In this document: piece after piece, positions 22,507 to 58,826 of the stretch
Numbering within the stretch: position 1 is the first letter of the stretch
How the letters are laid out: each line of letters starts with the position of its first letter
NCBI GenBank assembly: GCA_047495785.1
Contig: JBLDXI010000012.1
Coordinates: 930,001-994,000 of the forward strand
From: Lepidodermella squamata
Taxonomy: Eukaryota; Animalia; Gastrotricha
DNA: 64,000 nucleotides
Direction: 5' to 3'
Notes under the pieces: model-generated
Told to the model about the DNA's origin: nothing
The model's database searches: none
The model's input: the letters and a program-made list of their open reading frames with translations, nothing else
Made by a program: the position numbers and the translations under genes

Positions 22507-23811
22507 TCTAAAATGTTGTAGAAATTCTAAAAATTAAAAAGTAATTAGTGTCACCAAATGAAAAACCGACATGGTGGCTTGTTTATTTACTGATGATTTA
22601 TTCTCAAACAACATAATAAAATAAATTTTGTCGACCAGCGCGCGGTGAAAACATAGCGATGTTCGAAAACATGTAATTACAAGTTGTTTTCACGTGCGCC
22701 ATCAGTAAATTTGACGCGATCGGTGAAAAATTTGTTGCGAAAAAATAATCACCGTGCGAGTAAATAAATAAACACGGCGCGAAAAAGATTGAAACACTCT
22801 CGTGTTTTACCTGTTGAATGCGTGTTTTAAATTTGCCATGCGTAGTAGTAGCAGTCGTCGGTATTTTGTATCTTCGCGCGCATTTATTGAAAACGTGCCC
22901 GTCGCGTTTTATTGCGAGCGCGCATCATCAATGGCGCCATCGCATAAACAGTGTTATTACTATTATCAATTATTTACCTTATTCTTAACCGCTTTTTGTT
23001 ACGACTAGTGTCTTTATGACACGTCTCCAGTCCTTGACCAGGTTTCTTTTTTTTGATAGCCAGACAAACGTGTCATGCATAATTATATTTGCGTTTCAAT
23101 TTTGAAAACGTACCTTCATTCAGAAATTTTCTCTGTTGCCGGGAGCAACACGCCCAAGAGCGGCTGCGAAGGCAGCAATTAATGCGATAACGCGGTCTCA
23201 GATTCGCATGGTTGGTCAACCATTGAAAATGATAAAATTATACCCGTTTTGATAAGTTTAAAATATGACCAAGAAAACTTGTTGTCGGTAGAGTATTGGA
23301 ACCGAAAGCTGGGGAGCGAAAACATCTAATGGCGAATAACCAAAAATGAATGACTTGTGTTTACAACTAAACAAATTCAATTGAGTAAATAGAAGGGACT
23401 GGACGGAAAAGGTATAATTTGGCTGGACGGGTGGAACCGTTATTTCTGTTGTGACTTTTGTCTGTCATAGATACTGCTCCTGATTTTTGTGAAGCAAAAT
23501 AGGTTTTTGATCTTGGTTTTGGGTTCGACGTTATGCCTTCGCTACACTGAGCCTCAACGGATAGGCTGGGTGCATTCAATTGTCATGGCAGGAAACTTTT
23601 TTGGTGAATTTTTCAACTAATTCAAACTTCGTGTTTTATTATAATTAATGAAAATCTAATGAAAAACATATAAAATGCGCATTTCCGAATAATACAACTT
23701 CGATTCAAGAAAAGGCAGAGCCTCATATAAAAGCTTGAACTTCTCTCAAGCATAAGCATCATCAGCAATCTCTTAAAAGTTTATCTTTTCCGGCTAATTC
23801 AACAATCCAGA

Positions 23812-24403
23812 ATGCGCGCTGTCCTAGTTTTGGCTGCTGTCGCCCTCATGGGCGTTGGTAACAGCATTTCTGATGCATTATTTGAAATTGCATTTATGTT
23901 CCATTTCAATATCAGCTTTCACCAGCGTTGAGGCTGGTCGTGGTAACAAGGGCAAGAGCGTCTCGAAGAGCGTCTCCATCAGCGTGTCGTACAACCGGCA
24001 GCCGAAGAAGCACGCGATGAAGAAGCGCCCGGCCAAGAAGGCCTTCGTCGGTGGGCGCAAGCACCGCCGTGCCTCGTTCTCCAAGTCCGTGTCCGCGTCG
24101 GTGTCGGCCCGCACGAACAAGCACACCCGCAAGGTCTCCACCAAGAAGTTCATGCGCGTGCACAAGCGCGGATCCATGTCCGGCTCGTACTCGCGCTCGG
24201 GCTCCTTCGGCGGCTACAACAACAAGCATGGCAACAAGAAGGGCCATGGTGGCAAGAAGTTCGGAGGCAAGAAGCACGGCGGCAAGAAGCACGGTGGCAA
24301 GCACGGCAAGGGTCGCAAGGGCAGCAAGAGCGGCAGCTACTCGGCCTCCAACAACTTCTCGTACTCGGTCGCCGTCGAGACCGGTGCTGCTCCCAGCAAA
24401 TAA
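23812..24403 (+). CDS. Secreted highly basic Lys/Arg/Ser/Gly-rich protein with (Ser-X)n blocks, copy 1; exons 23812-23857 and 23916-24403
   Basis: TATAAAA at 23726, signal-peptide exon MRAVLVLAAVALMGV, phase-1 intron, strong codon bias, downstream AATAAA. Confidence 0.88.
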
Positions 24404-24584
24404 ATGATTTCAATGAAAAACTCTGCTTCAAAATTGATAATTTATTCCATGATCTGAAATCTGAAGAATAAAATACAGAAATATCTCTATATTCCAATTT
24501 ATCCTAATATTACAGTTGATTTAGAGGAAGAAGGGAGCCTATTTCAGGCAATAAATGCGCCATCATTCAGCTAATTCCATTTTG

Positions 24585-24640
24585 AATATGCAAATGACAC
24601 ATGTCGAAATTGCATTCCGATGCTTTTTCGGTATTTAAGG
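24585..24640 (+). promoter_or_regulatory. U6 external promoter: AATATGCAAATGA at -77..-65 and TATTTAAG near -30
   Basis: The element occurs at the same distance in all four U6 loci, including the one with unrelated flanks at 62117-62129. Confidence 0.65.
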
Positions 24641-24661
24641 TGGGTCAGTTGTCGTCTGAAT

Positions 24662-24768
24662 GTCAATCTTCGGATTGGCATATACTAAAATTGGAACGAT
24701 ACAGAGAAGATTAGCATGGCCCCTGCGCAAGGATGACACGCAAAATCGTGAAGCGTTCCATATTTTTT
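24662..24768 (+). ncRNA. U6: U6 spliceosomal snRNA, copy 1
   Basis: 5' hairpin GTCAATC-TTCG-GATTGGC, ACAGAGA box, AGC triad, canonical core, oligo-T end. Confidence 0.98.
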
Positions 24769-56883: not shown

Positions 56884-57317
56884 AATTGCAATTGGATAAA
56901 TTTTTCAGTGCGATCAGGACTTTCTTTTTATTTTTAAAAACAGAAAAACAGTAAAATGTTGCGGAGAGCTATTCATTTCCAAAACGACCAACTCGATAGT
57001 TCCCATGCAACGTGAAAATCTTTAGATAATTCAGAATAAGTGCCTCGTTTCAATTCTGCCGTGATTTGACCGAATATCATTCGTTGGAGCTAATCAATTT
57101 TCACGGCGAATTTCGTCAATTAGTTGAATGATCTGTTCTCAAAAAGAAACCAATATCCAAACTAATCAATGCACTTCTGTCATTAGTGATCAATCGAATG
57201 CGCCTCAGAAAATGATAGGGTGTTGTATAAAAGCTTGGACAGATTTCGACCAAAGGCATCATTGACAATCCTCTGAAATTAAAGATTCATCTTTTCCGTC
57301 AAATTCAACATATCAGA

Positions 57318-57907
57318 ATGCGCGCTCTCCTAGTTTTGGCTGCTGTCGCCCTCATGTGCCTTGGTAAAAATCAGAATCATGCCATCATTACCCATTGCAT
57401 TTATGTTCAATTTCAATTTCAGCTTTCACCAGCGTCGAGGCTGGCCGTGGTAACAAGGGCAAAAGTGTCTCGAAGAGCGTCTCGATCAGCGTGTCCTACA
57501 ACCGGCAGCCGAAGAAGCACGCGATGAAGAAGCGCCCGGCCAAGAAGGCCTTCGTCGCTGGGCGCAAGCACCGCCGTGCCTCGTTCTCCAAGTCTGTGTC
57601 CGCGTCGGTGTCGGCCCGCACGAACAAGCACACCCGCAAGGTCTCCACCAAGAAGTTCATGCGCGTGCACAAGCGCGGATCCATGTCCGGCTCGTTCTCG
57701 CGGTCGGGCTCCTTCGGCGGCTACAACAAGAAGCATGGCAACAAGCGCCACGGTGGCAAGAAGTTCGGAGGCAAGAAGTTTGGCGGCAAGAAGCACGGTG
57801 GCAAGCACGGCAAGGGTCGCAAGGGCAGCAAGAGCGGCAGCTACTCGGCCTCCAACAACTTCTCGTACTCGGTCGCCGTCGAAACCGGTGCTGCTCCCAG
57901 CAAATAA
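57318..57907 (+). CDS. Secreted basic (Ser-X)n protein, copy 5; exons 57318-57363 and 57423-57907
   Basis: The 5' half matches copy 4. The 3' flank resembles copies 1 and 3 and leads into U6. Confidence 0.88.
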
Positions 57908-58172
57908 ATGATTTCAATGAAAAACGTTGCTTCAAAAATGATAATTTATTCCATAATCTGAAATCTGTAGAATAAAATACAGAAATATCTATATATTCCA
58001 GTATATCCTAATATTGCAATTGATTTGGAGGATGAAGGGAGCCTATTTCAGGCAATAAATTTGCCATGCGCCATCATTCAGCTAATTCCATTTGGAATAT
58101 GCAAATGTCACATGTCGAAATTGCATTCCGATGCTTTCTCGGTATTTAAGGTGGGTCAGTTGTCGTCTGAAT

Positions 58173-58278
58173 GTCAATCTTCGGATTGGCATATACTAAA
58201 ATTGGAACGATACAGAGAAGATTAGCATGGCCCCTGCGCAAGGATGACACGCAAAATCGTGAAGCGTTCCATATTTTT
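58173..58278 (+). ncRNA. U6: U6 snRNA, copy 3
   Basis: Canonical sequence with the upstream element at 58096-58108. Confidence 0.98.
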
Positions 58279-58826
58279 CGAAAATCACCATCAAATGTCC
58301 CAAATACCCACAAAGTGAGACTCAATTTTTCGGTATATAAAATGTGAAAATATTTACCATATGCGGCTCATAAATCAGTGATTGTACCTGTCTGAGATGA
58401 GGGGCATAAGCATTTTCCGCGCTTGTTCGCTCTTGAGATAAACAACTTGTAAAAGGCGCGCATTTGACATCTCATCTCGCAATAATAAATATACCAATGT
58501 CATTATTTTTGCGACAATACTCGATGGAGAGGCGCGACGCTGTCTCCTACAAAGCGAAACATACCTATGCTGTACATATGCGCATTCATGTTTGCCTACT
58601 GCCCAGCCGAACAACAAAACGGTGCGCAGGTACAAAGAACACACAAATCGGTGCGCGTGTCGCGCCTATCACGGATCGCCGATAACGGAACAAAACACGA
58701 CAGTCGCGTCGCCCCTTCCGAAATGCTATTCGGCGTAAAGCTTCATGTACACAAAACTTCCGCTGCGAAATCATTACACAACACCGCTTGTTAATATACT
58801 ATATTCTCGACTGTTAACCCCCAAAA

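Follow-up and report, generated by a model that had tools for sequence, protein, structure and literature searches.

A 35-kb tandem gene array occupies positions 23726–58488 of a 64,000-bp stretch of the genome of the gastrotrich Lepidodermella squamata (contig JBLDXI010000012.1, positions 930,001–994,000, forward strand). This whole stretch is called the window below, and positions are counted from its first base. Self-BLAST resolves the array into about 3.1 head-to-tail copies of a 9–12.5-kb block of unrelated genes. Five intact genes for a basic secreted protein (B), three for a predicted small heat-shock protein (sHSP; H), three for clan-2 cytochromes P450 (CYP) and three for U6 small nuclear RNA (snRNA) lie on the + strand, and two broken trypsin-like genes (psiSP) lie on the minus strand. 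The ancestral unit order given by self-comparison is B-U6-H-U3-psiSP-spacer X-CYP. The units are spaced at 8.9, 12.5 and 12.1 kb in identical orientation throughout, forming three full units and a truncated fourth.

The order B-U6-H-B-CYP-B-U6-H-psiSP-CYP-B-H-psiSP-CYP-B-U6 reported in a first-pass annotation is matched exactly by the gene models and Rfam calls, and the B, H and CYP models and the Rfam U6 calls also bear out its placement of every intact gene on the + strand. As it had stated, all five B, three H and three CYP frames are open. Their introns are GT-AG except at the single GC donor it had noted, in CYP1 intron 2, which begins GCATGC where CYP2 and CYP3 have GTATGT. The unit boundaries, which it had left to a self-comparison, could be defined for units I–IV. 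The 16-element order reflects a few duplications of one unit, not 16 separate placements. The features of the array are as follows.

23726–58488 (+): whole tandem array, by self-BLAST
23726–~32600 (+): unit I; B-U6-H and CYP retained, U3, psiSP and most of spacer X gone, an extra B gene (B2)
28311–28395 and 29539–29879: short remnants in unit I of the lost parts, by self-comparison
~32600–~45150 (+): unit II, complete
~45150–~57280 (+): unit III, without U6
up to 58488 (+): unit IV, truncated; B5-U6 and 200 bp of the spacer preceding H
23812–24403 (+): B1, 177 amino acids, exons 23812–23857 and 23916–24403, TATAAAAG at −86
28765–29362 (+): B2, 180 amino acids, the extra copy within unit I
32712–33293 (+): B3, 176 amino acids
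45198–45787 (+): B4, 176 amino acids, chimeric
57318–57907 (+): B5, 176 amino acids
26046–27400 (+): H1, 433 amino acids, exons 26046–27095 and 27149–27400, with an N-terminal insert rich in Ala, Gly and Glu and predicted to be helical
34675–36016 (+): H2, 426 amino acids, exons 34675–35703 and 35765–36016, intron unrelated to that of H1 and H3
47335–48614 (+): H3, 408 amino acids, exons 47335–48309 and 48363–48614, mosaic
30268–32029 (+): CYP1, clan-2 P450, 490 amino acids, three exons
42948–44763 (+): CYP2, 490 amino acids
55068–56883 (+): CYP3, 490 amino acids, coding sequence identical to that of CYP2
24662–24767 (+): U6 of unit I, Rfam, 259 bp past the B1 stop codon
33545–33650 (+): U6 of unit II, Rfam
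58173–58278 (+): U6 of unit IV, Rfam
36420–36624 (+): candidate U3 small nucleolar RNA (snoRNA) gene after H2, Rfam
49019–49223 (+): candidate U3 snoRNA gene after H3, Rfam
37849–38852 (−): psiSP1, trypsin-like pseudogene with a frameshift, His57>Lys and Ser195>Ala
49992–51032 (−): psiSP2, same lesions as psiSP1 and further breaks
38900–42577 (no strand assigned): spacer X, second copy at ~51050–54697, short remnants in unit I at 29539–29879
45576–47248 (+): junction left by the youngest duplication, made up of the divergent 3' half of B4 and a 1.4-kb spacer that ends 87 bp before the H3 ATG

Across the whole window tblastn found no further copy or fragment of B, H or CYP, with the sole exception of an sHSP gene outside the array (H0, below), and the three U6 and two U3 genes were the only RNA genes that a sensitive Rfam scan detected in the array. 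The pairings can be broken: U6 is absent after B2 and B4, U3 is absent after H1, and no B gene adjoins H0. The window has the character of animal DNA, with short GT-AG introns (48–295 nt), TATA promoters, genes for U6, U3 and tRNA, and a GC content of about 44%.

Exchange of sequence between copies

Unit I is 84–96% identical to unit II by self-BLAST, the value varying along its length. Between units II and III, identity rises in successive blocks from 94.5% over H to 98.2% over psiSP and 99.75% from spacer X through CYP to B.

When the three H regions are aligned together, the partners in identity are seen to switch along the gene. Over 900 bp of upstream sequence, H1 matches H2 at 98–100%, and H3 is unrelated to both until about 85 bp before the ATG. 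All three are 97–100% identical in exon 1. Through the intron and exon 2, H1 and H3 are 100% identical, and a 100-column window over the H2 intron reaches only 63%, the H2 intron itself aligning poorly with that of H1 and H3. Past the stop codon it is H2 and H3 that agree at 100%, with H1 diverging. With partner switches at about 85 bp before the ATG, at the intron and at the stop codon, H3 combines its own upstream sequence with an H1-type intron and exon 2 and an H2-type 3' flank, and is therefore a mosaic.

The B genes show a comparable conflict, since they group differently by segment: B3 with B4/B5 upstream, B1 with B4/B5 in the intron, and B1 with B3 and B5 downstream. Homology of B2 to the other copies begins only inside exon 2, at 28916. 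In both families the coding regions are much more similar between copies than the introns and some flanks. Synonymous divergence (dS) in H is 0.013–0.031, yet some introns and flanks cannot be aligned; in B it is 0.03–0.28 as against 28–60% mismatch in the introns.

The youngest pair of repeats, 40691–45842 and 52811–57962, extends over 5152 bp with 13 mismatches, 12 of which fall within 45576–45835. Nine of the 13 lie in the 485-bp exon 2 of B (binomial P = 3e-7), and most are specific to B4, the 5' part of which equals B5 exactly up to the differences that begin at 45576. This 260-bp cluster runs from the middle of exon 2 into the 3' untranslated region (UTR). The 1.4-kb spacer that follows at the junction contains no U6 and has no homologue within the window, and Pfam searches of its minus-strand open reading frames (ORFs) gave nothing meaningful. 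The simplest reading is a recombination breakpoint inside B exon 2, and the B genes themselves would therefore be the substrate of unequal crossing-over. In B4 alone, seven substitutions fall within 170 bp and cause Gly>Asn, Gly>Asp and His>Asn changes in its GGKK repeat, and the 4.9 kb to the left of the cluster differs from its twin by one base. With both head-to-tail repeats and mosaic identity present, the locus is a tandem gene array under concerted evolution.

Gene products, codon usage and promoters

Exons of B, H and CYP were searched singly, and joined coding sequences served solely for codon statistics and the calculation of dN/dS (the ratio of nonsynonymous to synonymous divergence). 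The B genes have two exons and encode 176–180 residues, including a signal peptide. Mature B1 (155 residues) contains 30 Lys, 12 Arg, 9 His, 27 Ser and 25 Gly, a single acidic residue and no Cys, and the net charge of B is about +41. Four (Ser-X)n stripes alternate with basic linkers, and a GGKK(F/H) repeat is the site of most variation between copies. Exhaustive phmmer searches with exon 2 against 1.84 billion representative proteins returned 0 matches, no Pfam family matched B and the ESM Atlas held no usable neighbour; by these searches B is an orphan protein without a detectable relative. AlphaFold2, run without an alignment, modelled the monomer as disordered, with a predicted local distance difference test score (pLDDT) of 53. 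B1, B3, B4 and B5 (23805–23814, 32705–32714 and 45191–45200 for the first three) have an unpaired, splice-acceptor-like CAG 1 nt ahead of the ATG, which is missing from B2, as it is from H and H0.

Polycationic secreted material proteins are known from barnacle cement (cp19k), sandcastle worms (Pc proteins) and mussels (foot proteins). B resembles these in its signal peptide, its high content of Lys, Gly, Ser and His, its (Ser-X)n stripes with basic linkers, its lack of Cys and its putatively high expression; it differs from them in having no sequence similarity to anything searched and in the predicted disorder of the monomer. Our literature search on gastrotrich adhesive or gland proteins brought up no pertinent work.

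The nearest relative of H in the window lies outside the array, 19 kb from the closest B:

4732–5679 (+): H0, sHSP of 296 amino acids, without the Ala/Gly/Glu insert

The Pfam HSP20 profile matches exon 1 of H1 (E = 1.1e-6) and of H0 (E = 3.2e-5) at profile positions 6–65, and exon 2 aligns to the segment that carries the full-length relative P0001 to profile position 89. By these matches H and H0 are sHSPs of the alpha-crystallin family, with the domain of H split across both exons. A V-T-V comparable to the C-terminal I/V-X-I/V anchoring motif stands 6 residues from the C-terminus of both. As the first-pass annotation had stated, H shows no signal peptide when read from sequence, in contrast to B, and H is probably a cytosolic sHSP of unusual size. 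Four long helices are predicted in the insert (residues 81–209; block pLDDT 51–75, mostly 63–75). Searches with H0 exon 1 returned only three relatives, all environmental, at 44–52% identity and on transcript-like contigs of about 0.9 kb. A metagenome scan with the sHSP alignment confirmed no relative, and a word search with H exon 1 gave none, its candidates being dominated by low-complexity words. The C-terminal tail of H0 consists of about eight GYPT(G/T)-type repeats. H0 matches H in codon bias (effective number of codons, ENC, 25.6) and in a promoter layout of CACGTG plus TATA.

In Caenorhabditis elegans the hsp-16 genes form duplicated pairs that are small, divergent and driven by heat-shock elements. 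The H genes resemble them in having been duplicated locally as a block and in being near-identical through sequence exchange; they differ in encoding 408–433 residues, in their tandem arrangement and in lacking GAAnnTTC within 400 bp. Artemia p26 and the sHSPs of rotifer resting eggs are very abundant and developmentally regulated in dormant embryos. H would be like these in being cytosolic, seemingly constitutive or developmental rather than heat-induced, and probably very abundant, and unlike them in its predicted four-helix Ala/Gly/Glu insert, which we know of in none of them. Nothing relevant on gastrotrich sHSPs was found in the literature searched. Rotifer embryo dormancy is the subject of PMC10821554.

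The CYP exons match the Pfam p450 family with E = 5e-22, 6e-47 and 3e-32. The models contain FGLGPRICLG (the Cys-ligand loop), EALR (ExxR) and the PPGP hinge, and the closest solved structures are CYP2B and CYP2C (E = 7e-33). TGCAG occurs 9 nt before the ATG in all CYP copies (30250–30270, 42930–42950); like the CAG of B, it fits a spliced-leader acceptor signature. In the trypsin-like pseudogenes the S1 triad and frame are not intact: both copies have a frameshift at the IIHPNY motif, so that the Pfam Trypsin match is spread over two frames, and read TAAK for TAAHC and GDAGGP for GDSGGP. The description of the minus-strand passengers as broken in every copy therefore stands for psiSP, with the second copy the worse. 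Other minus-strand ORFs (39959–41561, in spacer X) matched no Pfam family. Spacer X also contains a palindrome at 39226–39468 (copy near 51394–51658) with 78-nt arms, 97% complementary, around an 87-nt loop, which may be an element of the miniature inverted-repeat transposable element (MITE) type.

Codon usage separates B, H and H0 from the other genes. The following lines give ENC, GC content at third codon positions (GC3) and the frequency of optimal codons (Fop); Fop was scored by the preferred codons of H0, and the comparison comprised ten ORFs for ENC and eight for Fop.

B: ENC 33–39, GC3 0.84–0.85, Fop 0.65–0.68
H: ENC 24, GC3 0.93, Fop 0.86–0.87
H0: ENC 25.6, GC3 0.91, Fop 0.86
CYP and other window ORFs: ENC 51–60, GC3 0.46–0.55, Fop 0.27–0.42

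The earlier observation that extreme bias is confined to B, H and the sHSP at 4732 thus agrees with the measured values (ENC 24–39 as against 51–60 for CYP and ten other ORFs). The bias is limited to coding sequence, the introns and UTRs of B and H being only 21–39% GC, and the preferences are codon-specific (ACC >> ACG and GCC >> GCG, but CCG >> CCC). Strong bias of this coding-only kind is the usual sign of very high expression. Because the introns and UTRs are AT-rich and the preferences codon-specific, we infer translational selection on B and H, which would then be bulk proteins expressed at a very high level; the same two features speak against regional GC content as the cause of the bias. 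All five indel events among copies preserve the frame (27, 27 and 21 nt in H; 12 and 3 nt in B), and dN/dS is 0.12–0.42 for B and 0.15 for CYP1 compared with CYP2. Since indels are in frame and dN/dS lies below 1, B, H and CYP are all under purifying selection, with the protease alone decaying. The extra copies of B and H are probably kept owing to a demand for bulk protein.

B and H genes each have their own TATA promoter, and the layouts differ. B promoters carry TATAAAAG at −86 to −92 with a TGCGC box 27–50 bp further upstream; H promoters carry GCCTATAAAA at −116, preceded about 27 bp upstream by CACGTG in H0, H1 and H2. CYP1 has no TATA box, and the TATAAAA at −93 of CYP2 and CYP3 is not common to it. 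The TATA box apart, the B promoter set has no conserved word of at least 7 bases in common with that of H. Neither GAAnnTTC nor TTCnnGAA, and so not even a dimeric heat-shock element, occurs within 400 bp upstream of H0, H1, H2 or H3. Because the layouts differ and no such word is conserved, the promoters give no sign of a regulator common to B and H. Neither common cis-elements nor a single transcription unit, by which a coupled cluster would be recognised, was found for the two genes.

The U6 genes match Rfam at 115 bits (threshold 44) over model positions 1–105. A fourth copy lies outside the array:

61947 (−): U6, Rfam

The four coding sequences are identical. Comparison of the upstream regions (24540–24661, 33423–33544, 58051–58172 and, on the minus strand, 62053–62174) shows that the three array genes have about 120 bp of promoter in common. 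About 70 bp upstream of all four genes, the unrelated minus-strand copy among them, stands an invariant box, ATATGCA(A/G)ATG. Within it is the vertebrate octamer ATGCAAAT, and the box is probably the proximal sequence element of this lineage. A further element at about −30, TATTTAAGG, is present in the three array copies and missing from the fourth, and a T5–6 run follows the U6 genes.

The candidate U3 genes, missing from the first-pass list, sit about 400 bp past H2 and H3. They match Rfam at 55 bits (threshold 34) over model positions 1–219, with a good box A region and the C' box region deleted in the alignment; boxes C and D read GAUGUA and CAGA and are non-canonical. Upstream (regions 36250–36640 and 48849–49239) a TATGCAAAT box of the same type as that of U6 lies at about −70, and a T6 run stands directly behind the mature 3' end. 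The box and T6 run hint at transcription of the RNA polymerase III (Pol III) type, of which plant U3 is a known case.

Origin of the array

Taken together, the locus is an ordinary tandem array under concerted evolution with an unusual cargo. The explanation that we consider probable is that a single unit was amplified and reshaped by unequal crossing-over and gene conversion, with B and H as its bulk-expressed cargo. An ancestral unit of about 9–12.5 kb, with B, U6, H, U3, a trypsin-like gene, a spacer and CYP, would have been repeated head to tail by a few rounds (about two or three) of unequal crossing-over between paralogous copies, and later gene conversion and crossover would have reshuffled the copies as concerted evolution. 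The recombining sequences would be the B and H genes, with breakpoints within them. Because these genes themselves would be what recombines, the U6, U3, dead protease and P450 genes between them would be copied along mechanically, the P450 copies staying functional and the protease already dead. Two points weigh against this explanation: a B gene lying outside the window could instead have donated the B4-specific cluster by conversion, and codon bias is an indirect proxy for expression.

Mixed tandem arrays are known from histone repeats and from 5S rDNA units, which in crustaceans, molluscs and fishes include genes for U1, U2, U5 or U6 snRNA or for spliced leaders. Like these, the present array joins unrelated genes transcribed by different RNA polymerases in one head-to-tail unit, is homogenised, and has passengers some of which decay. 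It differs in having only about three heterogeneous units of 9–12.5 kb and in its cargo, where an orphan secreted protein, a P450 and a giant sHSP stand in place of housekeeping histone or rRNA genes.

The first-pass annotation had proposed dosage selection on B and H as a module, with CYP and U6 as partners or hitch-hikers. In its fuller form this would make B and H a selected two-component system that pairs a self-assembling, secreted polycation with a giant sHSP of the cytosol, both produced in the same cell type or stage (an egg, a cuticle- or adhesive-secreting cell, or dormancy), with interleaving kept for balanced dosage or a common chromatin domain. Extreme codon bias limited to B, H and H0, with the same preferred codons, would fit such a system, as would the strong TATA promoters of both B and H, unlike CYP1, and the intactness of every B and H copy. 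The coding-only bias, open frames and in-frame indels agree with the selection part of the proposal. Co-amplification, however, is no evidence for the module part, because every gene in a duplicating unit is amplified together, and two or three unit duplications explain it. CYP, with ordinary codon usage, is kept equally well; the B promoters (TGCGC and TATAAAAG) and H promoters (CACGTG and GCCTATAAAA) have no word of at least 7 bases in common, TATA aside; 19 kb separate H0 from the nearest B; and the two genes differ in number of copies (five B, three H). A functional module of B and H is unproven, and we think it unlikely. U6 looks like a passenger of the unit, in line with the hitch-hiking that had been suggested for it. 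CYP likewise looks like a passenger and is retained as faithfully as B and H (dN/dS 0.15).

A related idea is that the B-to-U6 and H-to-U3 pairs form a recurrent chromosomal module under selection, with B and H made together in large amounts by one cell type or at one stage and the snRNA-type genes marking or insulating a domain of high transcription. This appears slightly more doubtful again; if true, it would point to an egg or resting egg, or to cuticle or adhesive secretion.

It is very improbable that the youngest unit (II compared with III, 98–99.75% identical) was created by the assembly, as an artefact or by setting two haplotypes in tandem, and that the real array is shorter. The public L. 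squamata assembly was built from multiple-displacement-amplified DNA, which is prone to chimeras, with HiFi reads of mean length 13.4 kb, near the 12.1-kb period (PMC11660948), which speaks for that possibility. Units II and III are nevertheless not uniform copies, with identity stepping block by block from 94.5% to 98.2% and 99.75%. H3 is preceded by promoter-proximal sequence of its own and by a 1.4-kb junction without parallel in the window, psiSP2 has breaks absent from psiSP1, and two 27-nt deletions are found in H3. No chimeric contig was reported for this assembly (PMC11660948), and the older units, at 84–96% identity, cannot be artefacts.

The least probable alternative ascribes the GC3-rich codon usage of B and H to GC-biased gene conversion within an often-converting family rather than to high expression. 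It fits their multiple copies and clear conversion tracts and was rejected because introns and UTRs in the same tracts are AT-rich (21–39% GC), while H0, the sole copy of its type in the window, is equally biased (ENC 25.6) and the preferences are codon-specific (ACC >> ACG, GCC >> GCG, CCG >> CCC).

Under the favoured explanation, amplification of one unit by unequal crossing-over and gene conversion, the cassette offers a clean, datable case in which unequal crossing-over between two highly expressed genes would drag along a P450, snRNA genes and a dead protease. It is also a warning that co-amplification is not to be read as co-function. The cargo is of more interest than the architecture: an orphan polycation and a giant sHSP without heat-shock elements, both marked for bulk expression, in a phylum that to our knowledge has almost no molecular cell biology.

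The genes flanking the array have ordinary codon usage. They comprise two single-ORF Cys-loop channel genes (10040–11161 and 18563–19708), a thioester/alpha-2-macroglobulin-like gene (11802–17123, minus strand) and trypsin-like genes with Thr-rich linkers (7558–9199; 20505–22299, minus strand; 58827–60332). To the right of the array a pair of tRNA genes, tRNA-Gln(CTG) and tRNA-Ser(TGA), is duplicated at 60407–60655 and 62170–62429 with 86% identity, with the fourth U6 between the copies, and this tRNA/U6 group directly beside the array forms a small cluster of Pol III genes.

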